Shown in pieces: positions 1,866-51,173 of a stretch of 64,000 nucleotides of DNA (positions within the stretch are counted from its first letter, which is position 1; each line of letters begins with the position of its first letter). Under the pieces are notes generated by a model. It had not been told where the DNA came from and ran no database searches. It saw only the letters and a program-made list of their open reading frames with translations. Location: assembly GCA_965113315.1 (NCBI GenBank), contig OZ220374.1; one strand, 5' to 3'. This DNA is from Podarcis vaucheri. Its lineage: Eukaryota. Made by a program: the position numbers and the translations under genes.

Positions 1866-3451
1866 GGCACATCAATAATTACAAGCACAATTTTACTAGA
1901 ATTAGATATCACCCTCAAAGGCAGAAAATGAAGGTTCAATTAATAGGGGAAATGAAAATTTAGACAGCAGTTCTTTATACAGCTGCTGCCCACAACTACC
2001 AATATTTTGGAGGCATAACAGACAGCAGCAATTTGGCATGCTGGAATGCTATGTATATATTTATATAGAGAGAGATAGGGAGGGAGAACAGCTTTTCCTG
2101 CAGTTGTTGAGACCTTGAGAATTGACTTGAGAAAGGATGCTGCCAGCGGGTTCCGTTTTTTCAGAGCCATCAGCCAGAAGTCCCTTACTGTCATATGCTG
2201 ATCTGAGGACATTTCAGTCTCCTTACCTTCATCACTCCTGCCCAAGTCAAATAAAAATGTGTATGGCATCTATGCATAACCAGTTGTGGTTTTTTTGGGC
2301 AAGGAACTTTTTCATTGGTTGGTTTAAGTATTTTTAAAAAACAATTTGTGGAATTGAAGGCTTCAAAAACATGATCAACAGGTATTCAGTTTTGAGATTT
2401 CAAATCCACATCCTGGAAAACAAATCATGTGCAAAGTAGCCTCCATGCGCATTTTTCCACGTATTGATTTATATACAGCTTTCCTTTTCTCTATACAGGC
2501 AAGAATGTCAACTCTGTCCTCCTGCATCAGTAACATCCTCTTCACATTTGTTAAGCAAGATTTCACTGTGGGGATATTCCATGACTGCCACCACAATTGC
2601 TCGGACAATCCTATTCACTGTTGCACATACTTTTCCTGGGGTGGACAATTTTCGATCTCCAAGGACAACTCAAGATAAAGGGCCAATTTAGAATCACAAC
2701 AATAAGACAATTGCCATGGGCAGCGTATTTCTCCTGAAAAGCATATTTAACATTTTGCATTGTATGATGTGAATTGTATTGTACACAAACAATATACACC
2801 TTTGTTAAGAGGACAACGGCTGCCTCTAGAATAGTCAACTTTTTTCTTTTTTTTGCAGTGTTCCCCCCCCCCCCAAGGAGGGGCATTGTTGTCTTCTGAG
2901 CTGCTGATGTAACGCCTTGCCATCGGCTTATACCTCAACGCTGGGGAGGGCTGGGTACTTTGCATAGATCACAGGTGAGTTTGGTCACTTAGGGATAACG
3001 TAATCCAACAGCCTGAAATGACTTGAGACTGGGACCCCAGAACCCACTGGCTGAGAGAGGCATGTCCCTGTCTTCCCAGGAGCTCCTTTGGAAGGAGTTG
3101 TTGCTAGTGTACTACAGTTATGAAGGGACACAGTAGAAGCTTGCAACAAAAAAGTGGAAAAGCCCTGCAGGATTTACCCAAGTGTTATGTCCTAAATCCT
3201 GCCCACATGGCCCTCAGATGCATTACTGGAACCGCAAACATTTTACAAACCAATTCTTTCCTTTCTGTTCCAAAAATAGTAGATGCTGCGCTGTTGCTTT
3301 AAACACAGCCCGTGGTATGCTGAATCCCAAGTACTCTGCTCACTGATCCAGCAGCTGCTAGGCTCCTTGGATCATGTGTCAGTTGGCTCTAACATGTAGT
3401 CCTTGCAACATCTAAAACACTCTTAGGATAAGCAGTTAAGTTTTAAAGAAC

Positions 3452-3472
3452 TTTATTTTCAACTTGTTTATT
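3452..3472 (-). terminator. Candidate poly(A) signals of the SSNA1-like gene
   Basis: Two AATAAA on the - strand (TTTATT at 3467-3472 and 3452-3457), 115-135 nt downstream of the stop codon. Confidence 0.6.
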
Positions 3473-3586
3473 GCTTCCATGATGTTCTTTATAAAAAGTA
3501 ACAATTGATACATAATAAAAACATTAATAAACCCACCAATACAAGATCAAAGTGTGACATTTCTTGTATATAACTTTTCACCAAGC

Positions 3587-3964
3587 CTAATGCTGCGTTT
3601 GTTGGAGCCCAAGTGTTTGAATATCCCCAGTCACATTTCTATTTATCGTTTTGTCTAAATTCCCCGTTTCGGCTTTCAAAACGTTCAGCAGCATCCTAGA
3701 GCTTTCCAAGATCTTCTCGTAAGTCAACGCTGCTTCGGCAAGAACTTCGTCAAGTTTCTTCTGTGCAGCATTTTTCTGTGCTAAGTTTTCACACACACAA
3801 TCCAGTTGTTTTGTCAGTGTCTCGATTTTATCCTGGAGCCTACTCTTTTCCTCTTCCGCTTCCCTGATCTGCTTGCTCACTTCTTCTCTTTGCATGTACA
3901 AGTCTTCTATATGTTTCACAAGTTCGTTATTATAGCCTTGTAGAACAGCCCCCTGGTGAGTCAT
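3587..3964 (-). CDS. SSNA1/NA14/DIP13-like coiled-coil microtubule-binding protein; intronless diverged paralog (retrogene), 125 aa
   Basis: MTHQGAVLQGYNNELVKHIEDL...YEKILESSRMLLNVLKAETGNL aligns without gaps to recalled human SSNA1 (hand count about 59/105 identical); single coding exon; Kozak AGGATGA with A at -3. Confidence 0.9.
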   Translation of the reverse strand: MTHQGAVLQGYNNELVKHIEDLYMQREEVSKQIREAEEEKSRLQDKIETLTKQLDCVCENLAQKNAAQKKLDEVLAEAALTYEKILESSRMLLNVLKAETGNLDKTINRNVTGDIQTLGLQQTQH

Positions 3965-4542
3965 CCTGCTGGCTCCACCCTTCAGAGGAGAAGGAAATGA
4001 TTCCTGCTTCCACCAGCTGATCTCACTACTGTCTGCCTGTATTTTATAATTTAAAAAGGAAAGAAAGAAAAATTGCTAAGTGCCTTTGAGCAACACTGTA
4101 AAACCAGCACATACATAATGGAAGCGTCAATATCAATTGTAGAAAATGTGATTAAGGAAACCATCTGAGTAAGTTTCCAAGGATCCTATTTTGCCATTAC
4201 TTTAACTTCTTCCACTCTGACATGCAAGTGGCCAATGGTATTTTCCAAGACGTTATGAAGCTGCTGATATTTTGAGACGGCTCTAAAATGTGTGCACTTA
4301 AGTGTGTGCACACATGTGTGCACTTAAGCTGTGTGCAAGAGAATGTGTAGATGCAAAATGTGTAGATGAATGATGCAGGAGTGAAATTATATAAATGCAT
4401 GTGCCTTTATAGGCATGGGAGAGCACTGAGGAAGAACAGAATAGGGGAAAGAATTGAAGGAAAGTTTAATCTCCCCTTGCCCTCCCTGCTTCTCTCACAA
4501 GGTTCTCATGCTAATAATAAGTCTCCGCCTCCCTTTAATTAA

Positions 4543-5040
4543 TTAATCCAGAATGCGGCAGCTAGACTGGTGACTGGGAGTACCACCAGAACCACATATC
4601 ACTGGTCCTGAGAGATCTGCATTGGCTCCCGGTTCGTTTCCGAGCACAATTCAAAGTATTGGTGCTGACCTTTAAAGCCCTAAACAGCCCCGGTCCTGTA
4701 TACCTGAAGGAGCGTCTCCACCCCCATCGTTCAGCCCGGACACTGAGATCTAGTGCCAAGGGCCTTCTGGCGGTTCCCTCATTGCAAGAAGTGAGGCTAC
4801 AGGGAACCAGACAGAGGATTTTCTCGGTAGTGGCGCCCACCCTGTGGAACACCCTCCTATCAGATGTGAAGGAAATAAGCAGCTATCCTATCTTTAAAAG
4901 ACATCTGAAGGCAGCCCTGTTTAGGGAAGTTTTTAATATTTAATGCTGTGTTGTTTTTAACACTCAATTGGGAGCTGCCCAGGGTGGCTGGGGAAACTCA
5001 GCCAGATGGGTGGGGTATAAATAATAAATTATTATTATTT
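4543..5040 (+). mobile_element. L2-clade LINE 3' fragment
   Basis: Encodes IQNAAARLVTG...[24 protein letters not shown]...LWNTL; (ATT)n tail. Confidence 0.85.
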
Positions 5041-5229
5041 GTCCTAGGATAGGGCCATTAAGGTGCTCTCTAGCTATAGGATGGCTTAGAAAAGTAAATA
5101 CACTGGCAACATGTGCACCAGACTATCCAGGATTGATTTACTGCAGTTTAAGTAAGGTTTCTGGGGAGATTTGCAGGGTTTCAGGGTGCTGAGAAGAATC
5201 CAAGCCTGCCTAAGCATTTGCTTCCTTAC

Positions 5230-5327
5230 CTCTATAGCGTCTGCTTAACTCGTACGTTTGCTGGTAATAGAAGGTAATGCACCATTAAGGCTACCTGTAC
5301 TAGTAGAAGCTCAACTGTGCTTAACTC
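5230..5327 (-). other. Putative non-coding 5' UTR exon 2 of the SSNA1-like transcript (98 nt)
   Basis: Minus-strand acceptor TGTATTTATTTAG|G ending at 5328 and strong donor GAG|GTAAGG at 5229. Confidence 0.5.
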
Positions 5328-5739
5328 CTAAATAAATACACTTAGGGTAATACAGCAAGTCTCCAGGGCACTTTTCTCCCACAATTTCCGGAAGGGCTGC
5401 CTTAGGATTCTGACCCTGGGGTTGAAAGGAGGGGAGTGAGAAATAGGCCAGCTACTAGAACTTTTCTGTCTGGAGGGCTCAGGCGTCTCACCTTCGAGGG
5501 AGAGGCCCGTTCCTGTGCAACCTACAAGAGAGTAGTCCCCAAACTCATCCAATCTCAGCCTGCAAACAGGGACTCTACTACTTTTGATTTTGTTGCTAGA
5601 GGAATCCTCCAGCACAGGCGCCTGCGCAGGAGTAAGTTTGGCTTTTGAAAGCGCAGCTTTTCAAGTGCCCTTGAGGGAGAAGATCCCTACGCTTTCCTGC
5701 ACATCCATAAAGGGGAAAGGGAGCTTCGCGCTGGCTGCA

Positions 5740-5954
5740 CAGTGGTACCTCGGGTTACATACGCTTCAGGTTGCAGACTCCGCTAACCCAGAAATTGTGC
5801 TTCAGGTTAAGAACATTGCTTCAGGATGAGAACAGAAATCGTGCTCTCGCACCGCGAGGCCCCATTAGCTAAAGTGGTGCTTCAGGTTAAGTACAGTTTC
5901 AGGTTAAGTACAGTCCTCCGGAACGAATTAAGTACTAAATCCCAGGTACCACTG
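5740..5954 (+). mobile_element. Tc1/mariner (Tigger-like) MITE
   Basis: TIRs CAGTGGTACCT...AGGTACCACTG; TA flank on the right; same family as copies at 12432, 15091, 26179 and 43713. Confidence 0.85.
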
Positions 5955-6303
5955 TATTCTCTCTCCCCTCAAAACCTTCCGCTAAAGCTGCAAAAGAAAA
6001 GCAAGCAGCGGCGGCGCCCAGCCACCAGTTGGGGGGGATGCCTCCCCAGCAACCCGCACTCCTTGCTTCGCCTCCGCGCCGCGGGCAGCTGTTTTCCCCC
6101 GGACCCAGAATAGACCAGCGGCCGCCCACGTGCTTCCCAGAATAGCTCCGTTGTCACCCTCCTTCCTGCCGCAGATCGCTCGGAATGAGGCGCCGAGAGG
6201 GGGCGGGGCCCGCAGCAGCCACTGGGCACCTCGGCGCGGACACAGGGAAGCGAACACCTCCGCGGCTGCGCACTGCGAGCGTTGAGGCCGCGGCGGCCCT
6301 TAC

Positions 6304-6500
6304 TTCTTCCCCTCCCGCAAGCAAACGCCCTGGCGGGTTGATGCGGCGTCAGCCCCGCCCAAGTCAAGCGTTGCGCGGCGCTTAGTTGTTTGGAAGGAAA
6401 GGCGCCTCTTGCTCAATAAGCCCGCCCGGGACTGTAGCTTCTGCAAAGGCTCGCTCGGAAATCTGTGCCCCGCTTCAGCTCGGTGGAGCTTGGAGTAAAT
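6304..6500 (-). other. Putative non-coding first exon of the SSNA1-like transcript (5' end uncertain)
   Basis: Minus-strand donor GAA|GTAAGG at 6303 inside the CpG island; TSS not determinable from sequence. Confidence 0.45.
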
Positions 6501-7896
6501 CCCATTTAGGTCCATAGGCGCTCACTCTCGGGCAAGCGGGATGGGATCGCGCCTTAAGTGCCCACAGAGGGCTCTGGGCGAAGCGTGTCTACCTAGTTAC
6601 CTGGGAACACGCATAACTGAACACGTTTTACTCCTGGATAGGAATGCTAATAGGACGTCTTCGTGTCCCCACCCCAGAAGGCTTTCCTTGGAGATTCAAA
6701 CTATTGTACAAACTACACACAGTGCAGAAACGGTTCTGGTGACGTTTTGTTCTAAATTACAGGGGCTTGGACTAGATGACCCCCGGGCTTCTTCCAACTC
6801 TATAATTCTACGAAAGTCCCATTCATAGCTACATTTTTCTAGTTCTCCATCCTCACCTCCGGTAACGCCCACTAAATAACTCCGGTAACTTCGGCTTCGT
6901 CGGGGATGGAACAAAACGCGTTTCTGTTATCCCAGCAGAGAACGTCGTTCAGCCGAAACAGGAACCAAAGAAAAACTCCAAGCCACCTAGCTTGAATTTA
7001 TCCACCACTTTACAAGCGTATTTCCGGAGCTCATTCTCGGAGGATTAAGATGGGGGGGGGGGGATACGGGAATAACCGATTGTGGCGGCGTTTCTCCTTC
7101 CCCTTGCGGAAATAGTCGAAGTGGAGACAGCGATCCGTGACGGAGACAGCCGGTGCCGCCCGAATGCGAGGGCTGCAGGCTGCACGGAGACTACCGATGT
7201 TTTCCGAAACTGCAGCGACCGAACAGAAAGCGAAGGGAGGCTAAAAAAAAACCAAACAACCCAAGGGGGGGGCTTGTCGGAGCCTGACGGAAATGGCCGC
7301 TGTTTCCCGAAGGAACTCGCCTTAGCATCCGGAAGGGAGGAGGCGGGGCATAGACTTAAGAAAGAGGGTGGGTTCAAAAAAGAAAAAAGGACTGGATGGA
7401 ATGGGAGGAGCTTTGGCGGAAAGAGCCGATATCAGCCGACGTTAAGCGAAGGCGGCGGCGTCCGAGTTTCCCGGATGTAGTCGGACGGCGGTAGTGTTGG
7501 GAGCTGGAGCTGTAGCTGAAGGGAGGGGGGAGGAGGTGTTGGCGGCGGCGGCGGAGGGCGAGCGAGCGAGCGAAGGCGGCCAGTGGCAGCAGCGGAGGGG
7601 ACGCGGCCGCCTTGTGCCTCCCGCGCCCCGCTGTGCGCGTGTGTCCGTCCTGCGGGGGCGCCTCTCCTTCTCGCTGGTGCGGAGAGGAGGAGATGGGCCC
7701 GTGAGCGCTGCTTCCCCTCACAGCCGAGCTGCCTGAGCCGCCCCTCCTCCGCCTCCTCCTCCCTCCCTCCCCCTCCTCCTCCTCCTCTTCCCTGTCCCCG
7801 GTCGGAGCGCTGCCTCCCCCTCCCCCCTCGGCGGCGCCCGTGGCCCGGCCGCGCCCTCCTGGTCCCCTCAGTCTCTCACACACAGGCCGGGCATTG

Positions 7897-7937
7897 ATGG
7901 TAATGTATGCGAGGAATAAGCAAAGACTCAATGATGG
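7897..7937 (+). CDS. WAC: WAC exon 1 coding part ([14 protein letters not shown])
   Basis: ATG at 7897; donor GG|GTAAAT. Confidence 0.95.
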
Positions 7938-10900
7938 GTAAATAACCCCCTTTCTCGTTCCGCCCTCCTCCCGTCTTACTCTCTCTCGTCTCTCTCTCTT
8001 TTTCCTACCCCCCCACCCCCACCCTCAATACCAACGGCCAGTAACGGTCGCTCGCTAACGTAACGTCTTTTTCTCCTCTCTTTCCAGCTGTCACGACCGC
8101 AAGGGGGACTCGCAGCCCTACCAGGTACCGACTTCTTCGCCCGCCGCAGCCCCACAAACCGATAGGCCCCTGCGGCGGCGGCAGTAACTGGAGTGTGGGA
8201 GGGCGAGCGAAACTACTCGAGCGCAGGCCTCGGCCGCCGCTGCAGGCCGCGGGGGAGGGGAGCCAACCGCTTCCCTTCGCTCTGCTCCGCGCGCGGCGGG
8301 CCGGGAGGGGGCAAGGGGGCGGCGGCGACTCTGGCTCTTGCTTGCTCTCTTACCCCCGCGACCGCGAGGGCTTGAGCGCGAGCTGAGGCGGCGAGAGGCG
8401 CTTGGCGGCGGGGCAAGGAAGCGAGAGGCCTAGGCCCGATGCGGGCCGCAGGAGGCGGAGGGCGGCATTGTTTTTCCTCCCCCCTCCCCCGAGCGAAACC
8501 CATGGGATGGCGGTAAGCGGCCGGAACCCGAGTCCGAAAAGGCCTCCCGAGTGCCGCTGACCGTCTTCCCTTGCCGTAGGAGACGAGATAGGAGCCGGGA
8601 TAGGTTCTAGGCCTTGGGCTTGTAGTAAATCCCGAAGGGAATTCTAGTTCATCAAACCCTTTCTGTCAACTGAGAAAACTTTAAATTGGGACCATGTTGA
8701 AGGTACCCCTGAAGAAATTTGGGAAATGGCCGGAGTGAAGCTGTGGGGGGGGGCGCGGGACATTTGAGGCTTTCCCTTTGTCATCTCCCCAGTGTTAAAA
8801 GGATAGGGAGGGCTGGAGGTGTAAATACGGTCATTTACAGGGGTTTTTTTGACCACTACACTTACATACCTGAGTGATCAGATGAAAGAGGCAGCTTTGA
8901 CAACTGGAGGCTGCAGTCAGTGACAGCACATCTAATGTAAACATTCATCACACAGCCTTGTGAAAAGGGGCATGGAGAGAGGTTCTGGACAAGGCCCTGT
9001 TGTGTTTAGTATAACACAAGGTGGTGTGGATGCTACAAAGCTGCACATTCCACTCGTACTACTACAAAATCTATCAAGCCCTTTGATTCTTTTGCCAGAA
9101 ATCTCCCCGCTCTTTAAAGTGCGTAACAATCTCAGTTCATAGATGAGTGGTACCACTGGTTAACATTGACTATTTGGTTAGATTGTGTGGGATATATTTT
9201 TAAGGGGGGAAATGGAGAGGATGTGTTATTGAAACTGGTATCAAATGCCTTAAAGATTTTTCAGTGTCACCTGTATATGGTAAAAGGTATTCTCCATTTA
9301 GTAAATAAATAATAGCATCCTGCAGATGAAATAATTCTGTTGGACTGTGTGCATAGTCCAAGGTGTTTCAGCCAAGGTGGTACTTAAGACTTATTTGAGA
9401 ATAGTCTCCCATTAAACACAATGAAATATACATAGTTATGATGTAGCACATCAAAAAGAAGCTTGACTTGGTTGAACATAGGCATCGTGTTAACTGTACT
9501 ACTCTGAATAAATCCCAATACTGTATTGGAAATAGAATGTTTGTAATAAATTGGAATTAGGGTTGAAAAACCCAGAATTACTTGCTATTAAGTTTATAAA
9601 ATGACATAGCACTAGTTAGGATCTAGACAATTGTGAAACTAGTTCCATGACTTAAGAGGATTTCTAGGCTTGATTTATTTTGGACAGCAGCTTCATGCTG
9701 CATGGCAAACTGTTTTTAAAAAAGATATTTCAAAACACAGCTTGAGAAATCTGTACTTGTTATTTCTTTCAGGCTCTTAAATACTCATCAAAGAGTCACC
9801 CCAGTGGTGGTGATCACCGGCATGACAAGATGCGAGACACCACAGACCCTTCACCACCAAATAAAATGTTGCGGCGATCTGATAGCCCTGAAAACAAGTA
9901 TGGTGACAACACTGGACACAGTAAAGCTAAAAGCATGCATACTCACAGAGTTAGAGAAAGGGATGGTGGTGAGTTAAACTTTAACTGATTTGTATTCAAA
10001 ATACTGCTAGTAATTGAAATAAATCTTGCACCAAAACAAAAGCACATTCATTGGGGTGAAGAATTTACCTCACCATTATTTCAGTTCATTCACAACACTG
10101 CCACAGGTTCCTTATCCCTGTGTTAGGGGGCTTTAGACCTGGCTGCTTTTGTTGTCTAGTCAGGATGGCTTCATAAACCTGGGCTTTTTGTAGAAACTGC
10201 CCTCCAGTGCAATCTAGCATGGTGGCGTTTGAAGGAAATGATACTGTGTCTTTTGGTAGGCAGGCCTTCATGTGCCTGATATAAAATTTGTTCTTCCCGT
10301 TAAGTACAGTTTACAAGAGAGACAGTGTAGTGTAATGTCCCTGTACTGGAGGTATCTGGCTTCAGATACCCTTACTCAAGCTTAAAGCTTGCTGGATGGC
10401 CTTGGGAAGCTACATATCTCACTCAGCCAAACCTTGCATTCAGGGAAATTATGAAGATAATGGGGTTTACCATAAATACTCTGAAAAGAGCTATATGTCG
10501 AAAGATAGGGATACAAATGTTATGAATAAAATAAAGTGAACAAATAGTGAAGTAAGCAATATATAAAACAAATTCTTAATGCAGTGAGTTAACACAGTTC
10601 TTGTGTCTTGGTTTTATTAAACAAAATTTATATACCATGTTATTGTAATAAAACCTATTACGTGGTTATTTGAGATTTGTAAGAATAGAAATAACAGTAA
10701 TTCCATGAAGCATTTTCTTTAATGCTAAGGCTATTACAAATCAGCATTTAAGTTTCTTGGGACAGTGAGGAGGTTTTTGTTTTTGACAAATTATCATGTT
10801 AGGTATCCTTACTGTCACATAGGTATCATATTGTTGTAGTTAAATGCTCTGATAATGACTGCTATAGAAGAAGAAACTTTTCAGGTTCTGTTATATTTCA

Positions 10901-13900
10901 TATTCACCACTGCACTTTGAAGGTTGTAATTGACAGCCCAAATCCTGTTCTTATCTATAGCTGTTGTGATGAAGGGACAACTACAGTGCCATCTTGCATG
11001 AAGTGTAACTACATCTCAAGAAGTCTGATTCTAAAAAGAGAAAGTCTCATTCCAATACTCCACTGGAGATTCTCACTAATGCTGGATGAATGGGCTGCTT
11101 CTGAAACTGTATGGGATTGTGTATATCCCATGTCCCCACCTTCTCCTTGCCCCTTGCTCCCTGTTCCCGAGGTTTTCATGTGATGTTCATGGGTAGTGTT
11201 AGGACTTTCCTCCAGTACTGGAATAGCATTGATGAAGCTGCTGATCTGGTAAAGGCAGCATCTGCCTACAGGCCTGTGATGCTTTTCTGCCACACTATAG
11301 TAGAGTAATGGGCCTTTAGTAGTTTTTACTACAGGTGTGCAACTTCCACAAAATTCAACTTGTATCTGTAGCTTTGAGAAGTCGCCAATTCTGTTACTCA
11401 GAACTAAATTGGATAAGATAAAAAATCAAGCTCTTTTCTTTCTGTTAACTATTATGGGGAATCAAAAAATGTCCGTAACCACCTCCCCCTTCACAGAAGT
11501 GGATGGGGTTTTCAGGCACAGCAGCCCCTCCAGAGTGGATTTTTTGTATTTTTAATTCATTTTTACAACTTATAAATACATCATACAATATTCATCATTC
11601 TCTTGTCCTTGGACTTGCCAGTCCATCTCTCCATGGCATTCTAGGTAGTCTTTTGTCGGCTGCATAATCTATTATTCCACCCAATTTCTTCTCAAATCTT
11701 CCTTTATTTAATGTTATCTGCTGCTCATATGTTCATTCCTACTTGTAGGTTGAATTGACTATTATACCCTCTAAGATACTCTCTAAAACACTTTGAAGAG
11801 TGGATCCAGAGTGGATTAAGCCTGCCAATTTAGAGGCAGATGCATCCGGGAATTTTAAAAGTTTGTTAAAAGAAAAAAAATCCGGTTATTTTTTGCCAAG
11901 TGTGGTTGCAATTTGCAGGTGAAATTTGGGGGTGAAATTGCCAAATTTCAGCTGCAGTAATTCCCCTTCAAAGCCATGATTTTTACTATTTTGGGGTGGT
12001 TGTGGTAGGAATCATAACATGGTAGCTGTGGAGGAGAAACACCCCCAGGAAAGACTGGAGTGGGTAAAATATCACCCTGAAAGGATTTTATTACACCTAG
12101 GGTCATTGGTAGATTTGGGGTGGGCTTCTGCCCCCATCAATGATTTTTTGGGATATAGCCTTTTCTTTTTGTGACATATCACCATTGACTTGCATAGAGA
12201 AGGGGTGTTGGCATTGGGGGGAAAATAGCATAGGTTAAAATAAACAGCATAGATTGAAATGAGCAGCAATTTTTAATGTTTTCTTGAACATTTCCCCCCC
12301 AAATTGGTGTGCTCTGGAAAATAATTAATTGTGATTAAAATCTAGACCTCTTCATCAAACTGAAAGATTCTCCTTGCCCTCCTGCTCCCTCCCCATCAGA
12401 GCTTAGTGTTTCTCTAGTCAGCTTGGCTTTACAGTGGTACCTCTAGTTATGAACTTAATTCATTCCAGAGGTCCGTTCTTAACCTGAAACTGTTCTTTAC
12501 TAGAGGCGTGCTTTTGCTAATGGGGCCTCTTGCTGCTGCTGCACCACTGGCACACGAGTTCCATTCTCATCCTAGGGCAAAGTTCTCAACTCGAGGTAAC
12601 TTCCAGGTTAGCGGAGTTTGTAACCTGAAGCGTTTGCAATTCGAGGTACCGCTGTACTTAAAATAAAAATAACAACAACAACATGCACTTAAAAAATGCA
12701 GTGCTTTAAGGGCAACTGAGTCCACAAAGTGAGTTGAGACTTTAGGGAGTCTGTGCAATTTGACTTGGGACTATGAAAAGCTCACACAAATCACCCCTTT
12801 TGGACTCATAATTTTGGAGGTACACAGAGATGATGCACATCTCCAGTATTTACCTTTTAAATGCACCTGTGCCACAGATCCATGCTTCAGGGTATTAGAT
12901 GTTTAGACTTGCATGGATTCTTCATTCACAGTATCAGTGACTTGTTCATCTTTGGTTAGAAAATAGGGGTAGCAGTATTAAAATATAAGGTAATGTGTTA
13001 TATTTGCCAATATCTTAGTACCGTACGTCAAGAATGTTTCTGTGGGGAGTTTCATTTTTAAAGGATGGTATGCAATTGTGACTTTACTAGCATCAGTAGA
13101 ATTGGGAGGGAGACAATTTTTAGGGAGTTGAGTAACTCTCTGGAGCAAATTTAGGAGGATCACCAAAAATTACTTCCCTCCCTGTTCTGCCGATGGATCC
13201 CTTCAATCAGTGGGCAGTCACCATTGTATATAGTACCACCGTGGGAATCATCTTGCTCCCATAGTCCATGTAGAAATTAATACAGATCATCTTGACCAAT
13301 TTGCTTGGAAGTAAACTCAAAGGTAGTAAATGTGTGCTTGTCATTTTAAAAATGGTAGAATAAATTTAATCTTGGGGGTATTCATCCTTTCGAGAAAATA
13401 ACGTAAGTCCTAAACTTCAGTTGCTTACAATTTAAAGGGCTTGCTCTTAATGTTGAACCCTGTTTTGAAACTGAGATACTGGTATGATCACTTTGTACCT
13501 GGAGCAGGGGCACGTCTTTCTTGAAAATGCCTTTCCTTGGCTAGAACTTTGAAGGAACGTACTGTACTGGGTAGGTGGGTATAAACTTGAAAATATGAAA
13601 ATTGGGGGAAGGTAGCAGAAGCTGTTACGTTGAACAGCCACTCCAGAAGTATATTGATCCATTTGGTTGTGCAGTAGTACCCAAGTGGGCTCTTGCATGT
13701 TTCCTCGTTGACGGGAATGAGTGTGAAGCTTTGTATGTGACCATGTTGGGTGTAAAAAAAGCAGGACTTTGATGTTACTGCCTCTTGGAGACCTTTGTGG
13801 GGTCCCTGAAAGTTCTGTGTGATATAAAAACCACAAGAGACACTAATTGAATGCCTGATCATGGGGCGGTTTCCTAGTGGATTAGCTTTTTGATGATGAT

Positions 13901-16900
13901 GATAATAATTATTTAATTTGTTTGTCTGTCTGCTTGCTTACCACCCACCTGACCAGGTTACCCCAGCCACTCTGCAGCTTCCAACAAATTACAACACACT
14001 AAGACATTAAACATTAAAAACTTCCCTATACGTGTACAGTGCTACCTTCAGATGTCTTCTAAAAAATAAGATAGTTGTTTATTTCCTTGGCATCTGATGG
14101 GAGGGTGTTCCCCAGGGCTGGTGCGACTATTGAGAAGGCCCTCTTCCTGGTTCCCTGTTACCTCACTTTTTGCAGTGAGGGAACTGCCAGAAGGCCCTTG
14201 GAGCTGAATCTCAGTGTCCAGGCCGAATGCTAGATTTAATTTTTCATAATTCCTAACACAATTTATTTAGAACAGAATGGTAGGTATAATAGTAGGCAGG
14301 AAAGTTTGATAAATCTGGAGGTCATCCTTTGAAGTGTTAAGTTGTTTAACATGGCTGTTCTGATCTTCATTTGCACTTTAATGAATTAAGTCTAATTTTA
14401 TATCCATTGAACTTGTTAGAACTTATTTGTAAGAGTAGACATGTTTAGGATTTAGCTGTCAGACATTTTTCGATTTTGGCTTTAGTTGAATTAATTTTTA
14501 AAATGGATTATATAAACATATAAAGAAAAATATATTGTCTTCAGTTGACTCCATCCTTTAAAAATTATTGAAAACTAAATATCAAGTATTAATAAAATTA
14601 TAAAACAGAGACAAATGTAATCTTCATAAAGTCATATTGACATAATTGCCAATAAGCACAGACCAAACAAAATAGACAAAATTAACACTTGCTGGGCTAT
14701 TTGTATTTTTTTATTCTGCCAGGAAAATAGATGTAGCATTTGCTTTCTGTAAATCAGGTAAGTTAATTCTGCTGGGCAAATTTAGTTTTGTAGCTATTGT
14801 CACTTAGTGACTAAAAAGTTTGAATCATAGAGATTGCCCTTCTGTAAGCTAAACTTTTAGAATTAGAGAGTTCTCAAACTCAAGATTCAGTTTATGACAC
14901 AGCTAATATTCTCAGCCTAGCTTCCCTCCCCCTCTTACTGCACAAATTATTAATGTGGAAATATTAAGCCTCAGTGCCTTTTTGTGCCATTGAACTTAAC
15001 ATTTTTGCTTAATCTTGGAAAATGATGTAGACCTCTTGAAAATCTTTATACTTTGTCCCAAGGCAAGATTCCAGGTTCAAGTTATCTGTACAGTGGTACC
15101 TCAGGTTAGAGGCGCTTCAGGTTACAGACTCCGCTGACCCAGAAAGAGTACCTCGGGTTAAGAACTTTGCTTCAGGATGAGAACAGAAATCGTGCTTCCT
15201 CGGAGCGGCGGCAGCGGGAGGCCCCATTAGCTAAAGTGGTGCTTCAGGTTAAGAACAGTTTCAGGTTAAGAACGGACCTCCGGAATGAATTAAATTCTTA
15301 ACCTGAGGTACCACTGTATATGCATGGGAAATTTAGGACTCCTTTCAAGCAGCAGCCATCCATACGCATAAAAAGCCTCTAACAAAGTTCAGAGGCCCAT
15401 CCTAGAGCCACAGCCCAAAATGTATGGAGGGCTGTTATTGGAATGTGGTTTTGACCCTCACCCCAATGCAAGAGCAGAAGCAGTTTATGCTCATGCCAAG
15501 TTTGGTTTTTAATTTTATGTTTTAAAACTCTTATCATTTATATTAAAAATGATGCGTAGCTGTTGAATATCGTAAAGGGGTGTGTGTGTGTGTGTGTGTG
15601 TTTATTGATCCACGAGTAAAAACAAGCTTCTATGTGCAAACCTTGTATCTGGCAGGCACATGTGTTGGATACAGTGCTGTTGCACAAACTAATGATTGTT
15701 ACTGGTCCATCAAATATGATGGTGACTGATCACTTGTTTAGAGAGAAAAAGCAAGGAAAGAGCACTTGTTTAGAGAGAAGCATTCTGGTGATGAGTACTT
15801 TTAGAGTGGCTGCTGCTAATCACATTTTAGGTCATATAGGCAAGTACAGCAGTGGATATAGCTGCATTCTTCAAGGTTTTTGGATCAGCAGCAATATTTT
15901 CTTCTCCAATGCAAAAAGAGTATGAGTATTAAATATACTTAAGGACAATTTCAAATAATATCCCTTACAAAGCATTCCCTAAAAGAAGAGCTGCCAATTT
16001 GTTGCTTTGGCAAAACATTGATCTGTGCCATTTTTTCCCCAACTCCAGAAGGTTATACAAGATAGAAGTAGGGATGTATTGCTTTTCTATAAAATTAAAA
16101 TAGACAGCTTCCAGAGATTAAACATGTAATATAGTAAAAACTATTATAATGTCTAAACCATCATTAAACCTACCAGTTATTAAACACACAGAGAGATCAA
16201 TATGTATAAAATAGGAATCTGGTGAGGATGTTTACAGGCTTGATCCCGGAGAAGTCTCATATTATAAAAGGTGTTCCCTCAGCTTTCCTGGACCATCTCG
16301 TGTGGATTTTAAGGCTCAAAACCAAATTGAAATTCAACTAATTGGCTTCCAGGACTGTCTCCATATGTTTAAAGTAATAGGATCATAGTAGACTGTAACT
16401 GTATAAAAACTGTGTGTTTATTTTGCTTAGTCTTGGTAGTAAAATGTTCGTGTTGGTTTGTGTGACGTTTCTGAAAATGAAGATGGTTGGTTTGATTTTA
16501 ATTAAGAAATTTGCCATCTCACAGTTCTTTAATTACCCATAGTAAAATCACTTCTATATATGTTGGAAATGGTTCAATGAAATCTCATCTGTATCTGGTA
16601 AATCATGGCCCCAATTTCCAAAACTTCTTTCACTTATTGTTCAACTAATCCAGTGTATTACTATGCCTAGCAGATTTGCAGAGTGGTTCCATTGCGGTTC
16701 TGTTTTTCCCCTCAGTATTTCATATAGCATATGTTTTATTACCTCTGGTGCTAGCTGCCATTTTGCAATGATCTATAATGTGCATCTCAATATAATGGAG
16801 AACATATCTGACTTACAATAAAAAGGACATAATATTCTTTGTCCTGCAAGTGGACATCTAGACCCTTTCCAAAAACTTTGAGCCATCCCAGTGCAAGAGC

Positions 16901-19900
16901 AGAAGCATTTTGTGCTCTACTACAGAAGTGGTCTTGAAATTATCCTTTTCTGAAATGTCCCCCCCCCCCCAATTTTTTTTATTGATTTTCACTATTTCAA
17001 TTGTTATATTGAAGAATAACTTAAAAACAGACAAGGTTTGCCTGTGCAATCAAAACTTCTGCTTATAAAAATACTTGTGTCTAGCACTTGAGTTGCTGAA
17101 CAGCTGTAGAGTGTGTATTATTTTAATTAAACACAGGGAAGACAGGATGCTGGTGATCATGGGTTCCTGCAGTGTCAGAATATGCAGCTTGTTCTGGGCA
17201 GAGTTGTGGTCCCTCTGAAGCAGCTCATGTACAAATTTGGGATACTCGCTAACATAGCCACTGCTACCTGTGCATCCAAGGAAAACTATCAGGGGTGCCT
17301 TTCCCTAGCTACAGCTTGTTCACTAGCGTGATTTCCTAAATATGGTTGGCCTGGCATTAGTTACTCATAGCATAGTTTGGTTACTTCCGGACTAGATTAC
17401 TGTAATGCTGTCTATGTGGAGTTGCCTTTGAAAACCAGAGACTTCACTTAGAACAAAATACAGCTGCCAGACTCACTCCCCCCCCCTTGGAGAAAATGGA
17501 ATGGAAAAGATGGTTATTTGGGAATACAGTTGGGCAGGCAGGAAGGTTAAGTTCCCACGTGTGACTTCTTACTGGTATTTAGTTGTGAGATCTATCCAGG
17601 CTTGAACTAAGGCACTTACCAGCAACATTTTCGGTTTGGTAAATTAGAACTCTCCACATCTCCTTAACTAGGAAACAATGCTTGCAGCCTGATTCCATGC
17701 AGAATTAGACAGACTGTCTTGCCAGAGTGGTGCATGCTTTAGTTATCTCCCACTTGCTCTACGTTGGGCTACCTTTGAAGGTGACTCGGATACTGCAGCT
17801 AATCCAGAATGCGGCAGCAATACTGATGACTGGGAGTGGTCACCAAGACCATATCACACTGGTCTTGAAAGACCTAGATTGGCTCCCAGTACGTTTCTGA
17901 GAACAATTTAAAGTGTTGGTGGTTGTTGTTGTTTAGTCGTTTAGTCGTGTCCGACTCTTCGTGACCCCTTGGACTAGAACACGCCAGGCACTTCTGTCTT
18001 CCACTGCCTCCCGCAGTTTGGTCAAACTCATGCTGGTAGCTTCAAGAACACTATCCAACCATCTCATCCTCTGCCGTCCCCTTCTTGTGCCCTCCATCTT
18101 TCCCAACATCAGGTTTTTTCCCCAGGGAATCTTCTTTTCTCATGAGGTGGCCAAAGTATTGGAGCCTCAGCTTCATGATCTGTCCTTCCAGTGAGCACTC
18201 ATGGCTGATTTCCTTAAGAATGGATGCGTTTGATCTTCTTGCAGTCCATGGGACTCTCAAGAGTCTCCTCCAGCACCATAATTCAAAAGCATCAATTCTT
18301 CAGCGATCAGCCTTCTTTATGGTCCAGAGTGTTGGTACTGACCTTTAAAGCCCTAAACGGCCTCAGCCTACTATACATGAAGGAGCATCTCCACCCCCAC
18401 CCTTCAGCCCGGACACTGAAGTCCAGCTCTGAGGGCCTTCTGGTGGTTCCCTCCCTGCGAGGTTGCAGGGAACCAGGCAGAGGGCCTTCTTGGTAGTGGC
18501 GCCCATCCTGTGGAATGCCCTTCCATCAGATGTCAAGGAAATAAACAACTGTCTGACTTTTATAAGACATCTGAAGTCAGCCCTGTTTAGGGAGATTTTT
18601 AATGTTTGATATTTTATTATGCTTTTAATTGTGTTGGGAACCGCGGTTTTAGGTGCACCTAATCTGCAGAGGATTGGATTGCTAGCACCGCCAGGTGATG
18701 GAGGCTGTTAGCAATGTGTGCATTTGTGTTGGGTCAGGAGGGAGCTGTACCCTGCTCTTAGTAGACAGAAGCAGGTAGTAGCCCATACATTGAATCTAGG
18801 GTGAAGGAGGAAGGGATACCGGACATTTTAACTGGACAGCAAGAGACAGGCCCTCAAAACAGTTGTTTTGCACATAATGCAAAGTGCTACATAAACTAGC
18901 AGAAGCAAAATGCAAGCTCACAAATTCACCCCTCTTCCAGCATTGCTATGAGAAGGAGATTGGAAGCATCTGTTTCCTGTTTTAAGCTAACTGCACTACA
19001 TCATGTCTGAACTGGGGAAACACTGATTAAACATGGTTTTGTTACAAATCATAAACCACAGTTTGATTCTGATTTGTTTCAACAAGCCATCATTTAATGT
19101 TGTGTCCAAAACATGTCATTCATTGTCAACAGCCTATTTGGAGGTTGTGCCATTTAGCTGAGCCCTAGCAGTGGCAAAAGAAAGAACCTAAAAACAGACA
19201 TCTTTCTGTGTTTGGGAGGGAGCTTGTGCAAGAGAAAGGGAATGGCAGTACAGAGGTAGGTATTAAAGAGGACCTGAAACATAGGGGTGTGGTGCAACAT
19301 TCACCAGCCTAACAGGAGGCATGCCTAAAAACTATACTGTTGGCACCTGTGGCCATCTTCCCATCATTCCATTCAGAAGCATGGGTGTTTGGCCATGGAT
19401 TGGGGGAATAAAATTAACAAAATATTGGCAGAACATGTTGCTTGCTGTGCCTGTAATAATTTTGCTTAGTTTTGCATTTAAACAAATTAAGTTATGATTA
19501 AAATCCAGATATTGAATAAAGACATTTTAATTGGCTTGGGTTCTATATCTCCTTTGTGTTGGTTTTCATAAAAACAATACCTGCTGAGTTAGGAGTATAC
19601 ATTAATGTAAATGTGCATAGACATGCAGATTCAACAGTACAATCCTATGCATGTTTACCTTAAAGTAAGTCACACCATGTTGAATGTACTAATTCAAGGT
19701 AAATTTGCATGAGAGTGAGCCTTTAATAGTAGAATAGTTGGACATAAACAATAAAGAAATATACAGCTAGACAGATCTACAATTTTTGCTGTCTAAACTG
19801 AAATAATTTTTAAAGCAAGGGCCTTCCCTGTTTTAGAATATAGAACACAGATGAGCAAAATCTGGAGCTGCAGTTCATTCCTTTCATGCTAACATGCTAT

Positions 19901-22900
19901 ATCTCTGACACTATTGTGTCTGCTTTATGTTGTTGGAGTTGTCCTGTGTGGCAAAAGGTCTGTTGCAGTCTTGCCAGCAGGGCGAAGAAGTCTGGCTGTG
20001 CCAAGTTTGCAATAAACAGTACAAATAATCACACTTAGATTCAGTGGCTATTTCAGGAGTGGTGGTCCCAAAAGGTTTCTCTGGTTGGTCTTGTTGGGGA
20101 CTTTTCAGCTTGTGCAACCTGAGGAAATGGACAAGCTATTTGGAAAGATGAGAGCTACCACATGCACTCTTGATCCTTAACCTTCCTGGCTTATTAAATC
20201 TGTCAGGCAGTTGGTTCAGATAAGATAGTAAATCCTTTATTGTGGGAGGGAGAAGTTCTAATGACCCTGAAGGAGGCTGCAGTGAAAAACCATCTAACAC
20301 ATAATTTACTCCCCTCCACATGCTTTTTCTTCATGTTATCAGTATAATTGTGGTGTGTGTGTCATTTTGTTGCCATTGCTTAGCAGTGATTTGACTCCTA
20401 ATTGTCTACTTCAGATTGCCAGAAATCTACCAGTAAATTCCTATCTACCTTTGGTCCATCGTGTATTGAATTTTTCTTACCTGGTTAAGGTGATGAACAT
20501 GCGATGACAATATTGCGCTAGGTTTTCTTGGATGAAACTGATAATTGGGATCCTTTCCAATCTGGTTTCCAGGCTTCGTTTTGGAACTGAAACTGCTTGG
20601 TTGCCTTGGTAGTGGTTGTTTACTGGGTGATAAAATGCGGGGCGGGGAGTTGGCATTCGTCTGTCTGGAGACAATGGAGTGTACCTCCAGGGTTGATGTC
20701 AGACCACACAGAAGTGACCTAGGGGCACAAGCCTGGGCAGTGTGTATGGAGGAGGTCCTGGGCTATCCAGAAGACAGAACCCCTGATGTGGTCTAAAGGA
20801 ATTAAAGTAATACGCTTGGCACCAGCTTGGCTACAGGGGTTGCTAGGAGGTGGTGTACAAGGTGCAATCCAGCTGTTTTAGGGACTTCACTCCAGATTTG
20901 TGTATGATTTATTCCATAGCCTTTTCTTCCAAAGATATCTCACAAAGCAGTAGAGGTTTAGGATCAGAGTTTTCCTTCTCCTGGGTGGACTACCTTCCCA
21001 GGTTCACAAGTCCCATCTGCCCCTCACCTCCCTCTGCAGCACTTGCAGAAACCTCCTTCTTGGCTGTAGGACCCACTATTGGTCTCATCCGCTCAATGCA
21101 CTGGAGCCTATCTTTGCATGCAGGGGAAGTCCCTAGTTCACCTGGTTTAGCCGGCCTGTTGAAGCAGTTTCCTGGGGTGTGGCCGCTGCCACATGCTGAC
21201 AGCTTCTAGGAGCCAGAGGTGAGAGTAGAGTGCCAGGTGGGAACCAAAGGTAGACACCCCAGAAGGAGCATGACCTGTCCCCTACAATAGGTATTATCTC
21301 TCACTTAATGCCCCATATACCCTTCCCCTAAACCTCTGGGAAGTGTATCCCTGTTAATTCCCTTAGTCCTCTTGGTAGCTTTTGATGCCATCAGCCATTG
21401 TATCCTTCTGGGTTATTTCTCCAGGTTAGGAGTGGGGAGCCCTGTTCTGAAGTGTGTGCTCCAGAACATCATGCTGGGAGACTGCTAACATGACCATTGG
21501 CCTGTGGGATGGTATTTCAGCATGTCTTCCATGTTTTAACATCTACATGAAACAGATGGAAGATGCTTTCTAATCTCAGGGCAGCAATGGAAATACTGAA
21601 TTGTAGACAGGCAGCTGTTTTGGCCTAGATGAGGGTAAACAAACTGACAATCTGGACAAGATGAAATAATCATGGATTAGGTATTCTGTCTGTTCTGGAG
21701 GTGCTTGCAGTCCCACTGAAGCATCACGTTTGAAGTTTAGGAGTTCTCTTAGGCTCAGATATGTGCTGGATGCTAAGGAGCAGGCAATGACCACGAGTGA
21801 TTCTGTCTTGAATGCAGACTGTGTCATTTCCAGGAGAAATTAGACCTAGTGTCAATCATTCATGCTCTTGTCAGCACCCTGTTGAATTATTATTACAATG
21901 CACTCTACATGGAGCTGCCATTGAGTACAGTCTGAAAGCTACTGTTGGTTCACAATGTGGCTGCCCAGATCCTGACAGAGTGCTTGTTTATATTGCTTTC
22001 AGGTTCAATTTAAGGTGCTTACTTTGATCTTTTAAAAATCCCTAAATAATGTGGGACCAACTATTGGGAATCACATTCCTCCATATGAACCTGCTTGGGA
22101 CTTTAACACCACTTCATAGATTTCTTTTGGTTCTGCTGCTGTCTGAAATAGGTTATATGAGGACCCAGGAAAATGTGGTGTTGGCAAAAAGCCTCACCAC
22201 ACCCCTTTCAGTGGGCAGTGAAGATTATTTTAAGCAAGTTTTTGTAAGATTCTGACTTTATCTAGTGTTTTGCTGCTATTTTTAAATGCTCTACTGTGGT
22301 TTTGCTATAATTTATTGTGGCTGCCAGTGAATATTTTATCTCTGTGTTATGCTTAAGCAGCCTTGTGTGCATGGTTCAGTAATATAAATAATAAGCATTC
22401 TGAGAATGTTTTCCTGCCTTGTACATTTATCAGTGAGCCATGGGACCAGTATTAAGAAGTTGGTGAAATCATCCCATTCATGAATTGGAAGTTATGTTAC
22501 TGGGTTCTGATAAGGTGAAATGCTTCAGCAGATGCATGTGAGGCAGAACTTGGTACAGAGTAAGATGGTTGAAAGTAGGAAGTGGTAGCATAATACTAAA
22601 ATGTCACTTATTTTTCTACTTGACTAGATGTAGTACTGCTTGGGAAAGAAACTGGGCCACTTGCATTCTTCCATTCTTGTATTTCTTACCTTTATCTAGA
22701 AGATGCTTGGCAAAAATTTGTAGCCTTTGCTTTACCAAGGGTACATGTACCAAGCATAACTCTTATATATAATTCAGGGGAATCTTTTTGTTTCCTTGCC
22801 TGTTCTCTGTTGAAGTTCCTCCCAACCTTAATCTTTACCCTGCACTTCTTATAAGCATGTATGTACACAGCCAGAGGGAAGAACAAGCCCATGCTGCTGT

Positions 22901-25900
22901 GAGAAATATACTGTGTTTTCTAAACAACTGTTTAGGTGGAGTATCTCCATCCTGAAGAGAAGCATTACAATTATTTAATTATGCATACATGTATGCATAC
23001 ATACATACATACATGCATATATACCCCGCCCATCTGGCTGGGTTGTCCCAGCCACTGTAGGCAGCTTCCAACACACATAATAATAAAACATCAAACATGA
23101 ATAGTAACAATCTAATCCAATATAAAAAGTGACAGTAACTTTAAAATAATCAGTTTATATAAAATAAAGCAATATTCAGGAATCCAATAGTAAACAGTAA
23201 AATTAAACATCAGCACATAATAATTAAACAGTTTACACCTACCGATTACAATAAAGAATTACTAATCTATAATCATTAAAAAATAACAGCGAATCACAAT
23301 GCATAAAATACAACAAAACATACAAAATGGTGTAAAATGATCAAATTGAGAAACAAGGACACACAACTTACAAAATTATTTTTTAAAAATATCCCTGAAC
23401 TCCTCTTTTCCCAGCTGCTTCTTTTGCTCTCAAAAGTCATGGACTTCCAGGGCTGGAGGGTGGGGCAAGGCAGATGGAAGATCCATTGCCTGCAGAAAGT
23501 CTCTCTCCTCTCACTCCTAAGGTAGTGGAGGAGCTATATTCTCCCTCCCCACCCCCTCGGTATAGAATAGTGTTAAGAGCTCTTGCTGTGCCCTCTTTCC
23601 ATGTTGGTGTCTACTCTTGGGAAACTGGGTTAGCATTCACGGGGTGAGGTGACATTTATGGTTCATGCATTTTTGTAAAACTCAGCAGTACAGGAAAACA
23701 TAGTGCTACTATGGCTCCCACATTTCCAGAGCAATGCAAATTTTGAGCCCTGTAAATGGTGTCTTTACGGCCACTGATAAAACATAGTGGTATCCTTTCA
23801 CTATTTTTCTACCAAGAGAAAGTTTACTTGTGCAACAGTGACAGAACTGCTGTGATCATCTGTAGGGGATGCTTATTAAGCTAAGTAATAAAATAAGTGC
23901 TTTGTTTTAGGTTTGGATTACTAATATACAGTTGACTCACAACTTCTGTGCGAGTTACTTTCTATGTATGGCATGTAAAGCTGAAATAACCCTGAATCTG
24001 CCCCCACCCAAGCATCCCTACCTTTCTGAAGCTGGCGGTCTGAGCAGGCCTTTGCCCTCCATGCAAGGTGGAGAGCTTTTAAACTGTCCGCACATTTATG
24101 AATTTAATATGTGCAACATTAACTGGCCAGCCACCAAGTGTGTAAAGCTGTGATTGTGGAAGTTAAATGCCATGCAGGGTGCAAGTTGGCTATAAAACTT
24201 TTAGAGAGGATGCTTTTGTTCTTTCTCCTAGTTCTTGGCATTGGCTTACTTTGAGAGAACTCAAGATGCTGCTCTCATTCTTTCAATAGAGAGCATTTGT
24301 TTTACAGTCATACCTTGGGTTAAATATGCTTCAGGTTGAACGTTTTCAGGTTACGCTCCGTGGTGACCCAGAAATAATGGAATGTATTTCTTCCGGGTTT
24401 CGCGGCTTGCACATGCACAGACGCTCAAAATGACGTCATGCGTGGAAGTGGCGAATTGCGACCCACGAATGCGCAGATGCGGGTTGCGTTCGCTTCAGGA
24501 TGCGAACGGGGCTCCGGAACGGATCCCGTTCGCATCCAGAGGTACCACTGTATTTATAGCATAAAAGCATTTCTGGATACTACATAAGGTGGTAAAAAAT
24601 AAAATTAGAAGTTTGGATAACTTAATGCAGGGGTAGGGAACCTCTGGCCTATGGGCTTCATTAGGCCTACCAGGTTTTTCTGTTTTACCTGCAATGCCAT
24701 TTTGGCCAAGCCATGCCTATTTGCCCTGTACCTGATGTCACATCTTAGGAAATGTATGCTTGCAATACAAACACTATTTACTAAAATAATGCAAAATTGT
24801 AGTTTACATGTGATAGGCATTCAAAATTAGAAAACATAAGCTACGTGAGGTATGTTCATTCGCTTATTTTTTCAGTTTTGTTAATGTTTTATCAATTATA
24901 AATGTCTTATTGATTTGTTAAACATATAATATGACTTATGCTGTAATTCTGATGTTTTGCTTATTTTTTTGGTTGCTGGTTTGCTAAATAATATAATATA
25001 AATATAATACAGATTGCAATTGTTTTACTGATGATTTGTTAATTATATAATTTATGCTGTAATTGGGATGTTACTGTTACTTACTGTTTCTAAGCCGCTT
25101 TGGGATTCATTTGAATGGAAAGTGGCATAGAAATACAATGAATCAGCAATCAAATCAGATGTGCAGCAAGTAACAGTCTGGCTCAACCAAAATGAGATTT
25201 GAAGGCACTGCTGATCAGAGGTGCTTGCTGATTGTCTGGTCTGGAGGAGAGCTTTGCAAGACTTCACAAGACTCGATAGTCTGCTGATCGTTGGGTCTTG
25301 TGAAGCCCTTTGCACTACACTGAGATTGAATTGATTATTTGATAGGCCTGTCATATAACTGGGTTCTTTATATTGGTGATTACAAGACTAATTAACTTAT
25401 TTGATTAAAAAATACCGCTGTAAGTATGTGATGAAAGTTGTGTAGGAACACAGAAAATAAGATGCAAGCAAATATGGTTGACTTGTATTCAGTTAATGCA
25501 GCAGAGTTGAGAAATGATAGTGCTTCTGTAGTGTTTTTGTTTTGATGACTCAGCTCAGCAACTGCTTCAGTAAGTGTGTTGTAATGTTGTTTAGCAATTA
25601 GCAGGTTTAATATTCAGCATTTCCAGTAATTATTGGAGAAGAAATATAAGAGCTACCTACCTGAAATTCATTTTTGTAACTTCTGTTTTTGAACACGATA
25701 CCGTAACATTTTAAAAATACCAGTCCGTTTAGACATGCTTACAAATAATAAAGAAAAACTGGTAGTCTGTGGCTTGAACACCTGACTTGATTCTGGCCTA
25801 GAAGCCTCACCAAAAGCTTCTACTAATTCTTGTGTCTTTTTCTTGGCATCAGTGGGAACAAAGCTAGTTAATACAACGTTGTGCTCTCTAGACTTTTATC

Positions 25901-28632: not shown

Positions 28633-28663
<31 letters not shown>

Positions 28664-50802: not shown

Positions 50803-50970
50803 AAAAGTTGTGAATAATTGCACATGGGTTTTGAGTACAGGAACTGTAAAACTGATTGCCCAGTCTTAACATTTTTGAGCTGCATTTGAGTAGACTTTGG
50901 ACCGTTGAGTTGGGCAAAAATAAAAAAGATAACATGGGAAAGGGGACAGGAGGGGTGTCATTCAGGGGAA

Positions 50971-51173
50971 NNNNNNNNNNNNNNNNNNNNNNNNNNNNNN
51001 NNNNNNNNNNNNNNNNNNNNNNNNNNNNNNNNNNNNNNNNNNNNNNNNNNNNNNNNNNNNNNNNNNNNNNNNNNNNNNNNNNNNNNNNNNNNNNNNNNNN
51101 NNNNNNNNNNNNNNNNNNNNNNNNNNNNNNNNNNNNNNNNNNNNNNNNNNNNNNNNNNNNNNNNNNNNNNNNN
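50971..51173. other. Assembly gap (203 N) within the WAC 3' UTR
   Basis: Run of N. Confidence 1.

Follow-up and report, generated by a model that had tools for sequence, protein, structure and literature searches.

Does the short open reading frame (ORF) that lies beside WAC in the lizard Podarcis vaucheri belong to a working second SSNA1 gene, and, if so, by what route and how long ago did this gene arise? An original prediction made from the letters of the DNA stretch analysed here (64,000 nucleotides of contig OZ220374.1, hereafter the window) had proposed an old retrocopy of SSNA1 kept by selection. The frame under study has the following position.

3587..3964, minus strand: SSNA1-like coding sequence, based on the reading of the ORF, the PDB match, the 98% identity to a Podarcis muralis protein and the predicted single helix.

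The ORF comprises 125 codons plus a stop on the minus strand and, as predicted, no interruption was found in it. Its ATG stands in the context AGCAGGATGA; the good Kozak context claimed earlier holds for the purine at -3 but not for +4, where A takes the place of G. The window ORF encodes a protein of the SSNA1 family. It matches SSNA-1 of C. elegans in the PDB (9dsm; E 4.4e-8), its closest protein match is 'SSNA1' of P. muralis (P0001), and the precomputed PF27720 annotation is present on every one of its database relatives, hundreds of which are named SSNA1. A local Pfam search of the ORF did not return the SSNA1 family model and gave only weak coiled-coil noise; the local Pfam copy probably does not include PF27720. 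The AlphaFold2 model (mean pLDDT 90), for which aligned relatives were supplied, has a single predicted long helix that spans residues 3 to approximately 105 with a pLDDT above 95, while the tail at residues 110-125 scores below 60. The window protein resembles the SSNA1/DIP13 family in its sequence similarity, in its length of ca. 105-125 residues with a predicted single-helix shape and in its conserved terminal segments. Over the first 105 residues it aligns gap-free with six non-human mammalian SSNA1 proteins at 55-56% identity, which agrees with the ca. 56% that had been estimated over 105 gap-free residues against human SSNA1. Within its own lineage, the identity of SSNA1-like to the canonical protein amounts to only 54-58%.

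The 125-residue sequence has no exact match in the protein collection, and five other lacertids carry a 127-residue version. Compared with these five, the window is missing six nucleotides at position 3642 (two codons, Met-Leu), in frame and within the disordered tail. The last part of the tail (3587-3622, minus strand, residues 114-125) forms a C-terminal extension of about 10 residues ending in QQTQH that is conserved in non-gecko squamates. In geckos, python, turtles and birds SSNA1-like stops earlier, before this extension, and some unnamed bird proteins (e.g., P0019 and P0021) run past the usual stop into a similar ...QMFGL... stretch.

Protein searches with a turtle relative and with a turtle canonical protein revealed two gene types, SSNA1-like (type A) and canonical (type B), of which type B is extremely conserved from a brachiopod and molluscs to mammals; the canonical SSNA1 of a lizard is still ca. 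68% identical to that of the brachiopod. In P. muralis, P. raffonei, P. lilfordi, Lacerta agilis and Zootoca vivipara, type A is located on a chromosome of 57-64 Mb and type B on one of 47-51 Mb, the search for the canonical copy having covered these five related lacertids. Both types also occur in Hemicordylus, Sceloporus, Anolis, Eublepharis, Heteronotia and three turtles. SSNA1-like is thus not the sole SSNA1 of these animals, since the five lacertids, other squamates and turtles carry a canonical SSNA1 on another chromosome. It could still be argued from the labels of NCBI and Ensembl, which call type A 'SSNA1' in P. muralis, Anolis and several birds, that the window gene is the canonical ortholog itself, relocated and fast-evolving, and that no second gene exists. 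Against this, the same species have a canonical SSNA1 that is much more strongly conserved and lies on a different chromosome, and the two types part at 100/99 support. This refutes the idea for the five lacertids and leaves it practically no probability.

We built a maximum-likelihood tree from 61 proteins, and in it a branch with 100/99 support sets the type A sequences of squamates, turtles and birds apart from the rest. About 27 intact type A proteins fall in this one clade, so that the orthologs were not found to be disrupted, and the order of branching inside it is broadly that of the species. Variation among the canonical proteins was too small to place the attachment of type A. At six positions the two types are told apart in practically every protein; in type A, for example, residue 58 has changed from Asn to Cys and residue 90 from Gln to Arg. 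There are 47 core positions that are conserved in both types. The protein searches yielded no type A protein from mammals, amphibians or fish. The single clade of squamates, turtles and birds therefore places type A before their split: judged from the protein tree, it is older than the separation of lepidosaurs from turtles and birds, and its age may reach back to the amniote ancestor. By textbook dating, lepidosaurs parted from turtles and birds approximately 280 million years ago.

The position next to WAC offers a further hint of this common origin. The features of WAC and of the sequence just in front of it are as follows.

7898..50815, plus strand: WAC coding exons, with the stop near 50815, recognized by motifs in order and by the WW domain.
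7898..7937, plus strand: coding part of WAC exon 1, with the start codon at 7898 and a GT donor at 7938.
34472-34588, plus strand: exon of the WAC WW domain (Pfam WW, E 1.8e-12).
7880..7894, minus strand: antisense of the bases just before the WAC ATG, reading MPGLC (tblastn of the N-termini of the bird models P0056 and P0027, E 0.009 and 0.03).

We take this neighbour to be WAC because of its WW domain and the short WAC motifs found in order along the window, rather than from a database name. The search of a WAC exon against the ESM Atlas gave noise only, and no WAC chain was found in the PDB. A run of 203 N bases (50971-51173) follows just past the WAC stop codon. With WAC on the plus strand (ATG at 7898) and SSNA1-like on the minus strand, the two genes are arranged head-to-head, as originally proposed.

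Two bird SSNA1-like models (P0056 and P0027) begin with MPGLC, and the score of this match was reached anywhere in the window by only 1-2 of 100 shuffles. This suggests that SSNA1-like of birds lies at the same locus, in which case WAC exon 1 and the bird leader exon would appear to share sequence on opposite strands. The chicken SSNA1-like copy is on a contig of 149.9 Mb, a length that presumably corresponds to chicken chromosome 2, to which we take the WAC neighbourhood to map. These observations bear on a further explanation, in which squamates, turtles and birds each acquired a retrocopy independently and long-branch attraction grouped the copies. All type A proteins do sit on long branches relative to the canonical set. 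They nevertheless have six fixed differences in common and form the 100/99 clade, and the two bird models starting with the antisense of the bases before the WAC ATG suggest the same locus, making separate origins very improbable. We therefore continue with a single type A gene of common descent.

Whether the gene is expressed was evaluated using RNA of a sister species, with the reads mapped on positions 3000-6600. The transcript features on the coding side are the following.

3382..4036, minus strand: coding exon, consisting of a 72-nt part of the 5' leader, the coding sequence and the 3' UTR (transcript contigs X1 and X6 and stranded reads; 3' end within ca. 3382-3463).
4037..4038, minus strand: splice acceptor AG (TACAG/G), where both contigs leave the window and where the P. 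lilfordi model P0195 joins an upstream exon.
3472-3467 and 3457-3452, minus strand: two AATAAA polyadenylation signals seen in the sequence, 115-135 nt past the stop.

The sister-species transcript contigs match the window at 3382-4038 (X1) and 3463-4038 (X6) and then diverge, running on for 514 and 340 letters, respectively, with no match anywhere in 4039-6600. The contig break at 4038 and the lack of a match in 4039-6600 therefore indicate that the exon is spliced at TACAG/G (4037/4036), 72 nt upstream of the SSNA1-like ATG, to a leader located further upstream. Two raw stranded RNA-seq runs of the sister species, of which 12% each was used, cover only 3484-4038 at a depth of 3-13x, and the first mate lies on the plus strand in every pair, which is the pattern of minus-strand RNA. 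In addition, most of the coding exon is contained in 14 small, probable-RNA assemblies from four studies. The SSNA1-like gene is transcribed from the minus strand and spliced. Both the upstream splice acceptor and the downstream AATAAA signals that had been pointed out earlier are in place, and the stranded reads and spliced contigs over the exon show expression in the sister species. The description of the gene as intronless applies to its uninterrupted coding sequence but not to its 5' leader, which contains an intron. The protein of the sister species, with L43I and a 6-nt in-frame insertion relative to the window, is identical to P. muralis P0001.

Short isoforms in Ensembl and UniProt (P0012, P0039, P0042-P0054) have 35-37 internal residues deleted, with boundaries that differ among lizards, turtles and birds. 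The joint of this internal deletion was not found in the RNA reads mapped on 3000-6600. We considered that these isoforms might reflect canonical introns in the SSNA1-like gene and rejected this, given that the boundaries vary by taxon and the joint is absent in the reads; they probably represent cryptic splicing or model artefacts.

The upstream part of the transcript would extend towards WAC through the following features.

4037..6856, minus strand: putative 5'-leader intron (no exon-like RNA coverage except at repeats; best donor at 6857; junction of P0195).
6857..7034, minus strand: putative non-coding leader exon in its minimum extent (mapping of P0195, junction codon, donor score), the true start lying further upstream in the CpG island.
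6035..6163, minus strand: conserved counterpart of the leader exon of Rhineura floridana (tblastn of the N-terminus of P0002, E 2e-13).
5900..8600, no strand assigned: CpG island (GC 0.62, CpG observed/expected 0.91), common to both divergent genes.

At its N-terminal end, the P. lilfordi model P0195 aligns with 6925-6881. The codon at its junction agrees with a splice from 6857 to 4036, and the donor at 6857 (CCGGAG/GTGAGG) is the top-scoring one. The leader is estimated to reach at least ca. 7200-7370, a few hundred bases from the 5' end of WAC, and would probably lie within the WAC CpG island. The putative leader extends from 6857 to at least 7034, the contigs carry 340-514 nt of leader, and the WAC ATG is at 7898. 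If the leader does lie in the CpG island, SSNA1-like and WAC would be served by one bidirectional promoter. An ATG at 7034 (minus strand) in the putative leader exon is the start codon of model P0195 and could possibly belong to an upstream ORF acting on translation. The counterpart of the Rhineura leader at 6035-6163 had no reads in the P. muralis-like RNA runs, with zero depth across 6025-6387, and could represent either a leader in alternative use or a conserved element near the promoter.

The putative leader intron also contains two interspersed repeats (4452-5056 and 5662-6024). Reads of every RNA run pile up on them to a very high depth, on either strand and with numerous loose ends, and the repeats are therefore attributed to abundant transposable-element families. 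An Rfam search of the window gave no match.

The coding sequence of the window and that of the sister species differ by seven single-base differences or polymorphisms, six of them synonymous at third positions and one changing L to I, and the only indel is the 6-nt, in-frame one in the disordered tail. With 76 synonymous and 299 nonsynonymous sites, this corresponds to a pN/pS of approximately 0.04, far from a ratio near 1, and the neutral probability of at most one nonsynonymous change is ca. 4e-4. In the 105-residue core of the five lacertids the summed pairwise differences amount to 36 for type A and 26 for the canonical protein, while for deeper squamate pairs type A has changed at 1.3-5.3 times the canonical rate (mean 2.8). 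As read from these substitutions, SSNA1-like in lacertids is under purifying selection. The stem branches of 0.44 and 0.47 changes per site are long and therefore point to an early rapid divergence of type A. The gene would thus have passed through a rapid early divergence followed by purifying selection in lacertids.

These data also allow weighing whether the locus is a transcribed processed pseudogene whose frame has stayed open by chance. The gene does sit in an antisense transcription unit close to a promoter, a setting in which passive transcription often occurs, and expression could be explained in this way. Chance would, however, also have to account for ca. 27 orthologs with intact frames in lineages that split about 280 million years ago, for a synonymous to nonsynonymous ratio of 6:1 with an indel that stays in frame, and for a divergence within lacertids as low as that of the canonical gene. 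We consider a pseudogene highly unlikely on these grounds, and regard the locus as a functional gene in what follows.

The gene structure of the canonical type provides the main clue to the route of copying. In turtle canonical isoforms the N-termini swap just before I19 and one isoform diverges after K84; a canonical model of the donkey (Equus asinus) diverges after residue 106. These isoform models, rather than genomic DNA, would place the canonical coding introns after codons 18 and 84, and the window ORF is continuous across both positions. The loss of all coding introns at once, together with a new chromosome and a restricted set of taxa, is the signature of retroposition. RNA-based copying is most likely, more so than other modes of duplication, and it is the missing introns on which this reading rests. 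We looked for a poly-A tract or target-site duplication and saw none downstream of the 3' UTR; their erosion is expected after ca. 280 million years.

The lack of such traces would equally suit a DNA-based or whole-genome duplicate that lost its coding introns later, and so would the presence of a leader intron. The absence of coding introns was read at the window's locus, and in the tree the canonical proteins vary too little to place type A relative to their clade, which gives this alternative additional room. On the other hand, it requires that both putative canonical coding introns went missing together. In the searches type A came up in sauropsids only, with no fish, amphibian or mammal among its carriers, which speaks against a duplicate dating from early vertebrates, and the tail and 'KKE' motif of type A are most like those of the reptile canonical type. 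A DNA-level duplication is unlikely in our view. We conclude that the second SSNA1 gene of reptiles and birds is most likely an ancient retrocopy that is transcribed, intact and constrained and that stands beside WAC in the window. The retrocopy originally proposed is in this way supported by the parent located elsewhere in five lacertids, by the absence of the putative parental introns, by transcription and by purifying selection.

Based on these data, we propose a theoretical scheme for the origin of the gene. Reverse transcription of a spliced canonical SSNA1 mRNA would have yielded a copy that was inserted at the CpG-island promoter of WAC, on its divergent side. This would predate the split of squamates, turtles and birds and so have taken place roughly 280 million years ago or earlier. 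The resulting minus-strand transcript would consist of a non-coding leader spliced to the single coding exon at 4036 and would be polyadenylated near 3380-3460.

The distribution of the two types outside squamates and turtles raises the question of what happened to the parent gene. Only retro-type SSNA1 was seen in birds (P0025, P0216, P0033 and others), with no bird canonical SSNA1 among the best 120 of 973 matches to the turtle canonical query, nor in the crocodilian and turtle clusters. Conversely, only the canonical type was found in crocodilians (P0142, P0200) and tuatara (P0062), where our searches gave no retro-type. A differential sorting, in which birds kept only the retrogene and crocodilians and tuatara only the parent, is a tentative reading that we hold at somewhat less than even weight, and the pattern may instead reflect assembly or annotation gaps in GC-rich bird genes. 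If the sorting is true, 'chicken SSNA1' would be a retrogene without a parent, and six changes would have become fixed in a protein that has otherwise hardly changed between molluscs and mammals. What is annotated as SSNA1 in chicken and many other birds is of the retro-type and not the ortholog of human SSNA1, which matters for cross-species work. A search of the literature found no paper naming SSNA1 among the genes missing in birds.

SSNA1 has been studied for its role in centriole stability, ciliogenesis, microtubule branching and the sensing of microtubule damage, and the canonical protein is among the most conserved small cytoskeletal proteins. The distribution of conserved residues gives indications on what the second copy may do. 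In both types, the N-terminal motif and the C-terminal segment are best conserved, with residues 11-17 and 82-96 nearly invariant, and the central coiled coil holds most of the type A changes. In the fibrils of C. elegans SSNA-1, triple-helix junctions arise where the overhanging C-terminus of one antiparallel dimer meets the N-terminal region of the next, and L19 and L89 are among the junction residues (PMC12350680). The equivalents of these two residues in SSNA1-like, L22 and L92, are invariant in both types. SSNA1-like would thus keep the SSNA1 design of one long coiled-coil helix with near-invariant terminal segments. By analogy, its self-assembly into fibrils most likely persists, with centrioles, cilia or microtubules as the site. 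Mixed fibrils with canonical SSNA1 may occur, and the gene might have a specialised role or tissue. Having diverged and then stayed constant for ca. 280 million years in reptiles and birds, the second copy amounts to a natural experiment, in which the central coiled coil changed and the junction-forming ends did not.

Inter-chain disulfides through the type-specific Cys56/Cys58 were also considered and dropped, as in the antiparallel register of C. elegans these residues do not face their own copies.

Automatic annotation by NCBI and Ensembl already names the gene 'SSNA1' or 'SSNA1-like', and a description of it as a retrogene was not found in papers; none of the papers found in our literature search describes a duplication or retrocopy of SSNA1 or places SSNA1 beside WAC. 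Retrogenes are generally held to be scarce in reptile and bird lineages.

Among known systems, the closest is canonical SSNA1/NA14/DIP13 itself (9dsm), which SSNA1-like resembles in its similar length, its predicted single long coiled-coil helix, its gap-free alignment over 105 residues, and the near-invariant N-terminal motif (residues 4-17) and C-terminal segment (residues 76-103). It differs from the canonical gene in six fixed substitutions, in having no coding introns, in its location on a different chromosome and in changing 2-5 times faster across squamates, and, in non-gecko squamates, in an extra conserved tail of 10 residues. With regard to the locus, human WAC-AS1, which we take to be a non-coding, head-to-head antisense lncRNA at the WAC promoter, matches the SSNA1-like leader in where it lies next to WAC and in its direction, a correspondence of position only.

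The birds in which only retro-type SSNA1 was seen recall the 'orphan' retrogenes, which persist after the parent gene is gone (Ciomborowska et al. 2013, PMC3548309). The parent gene is, in contrast, still present in the lizard lineage of the window, and its loss in birds is only a possibility. Finally, functional retrogenes are known to recruit the bidirectional CpG-island promoter of a neighbour and to acquire a leader exon at the 5' end (Carelli et al. 2016, PMC4772013; reviewed in PMC5470649). SSNA1-like shares with them an intronless coding exon, a spliced non-coding leader and a divergent orientation relative to a CpG-island gene, the shared promoter being the putative one described above. 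Compared with most catalogued cases, which come from mainly mammalian surveys, it is sauropsid-specific and much older, and it would represent a clean, very old case of a retrocopy surviving beside a CpG-island promoter.
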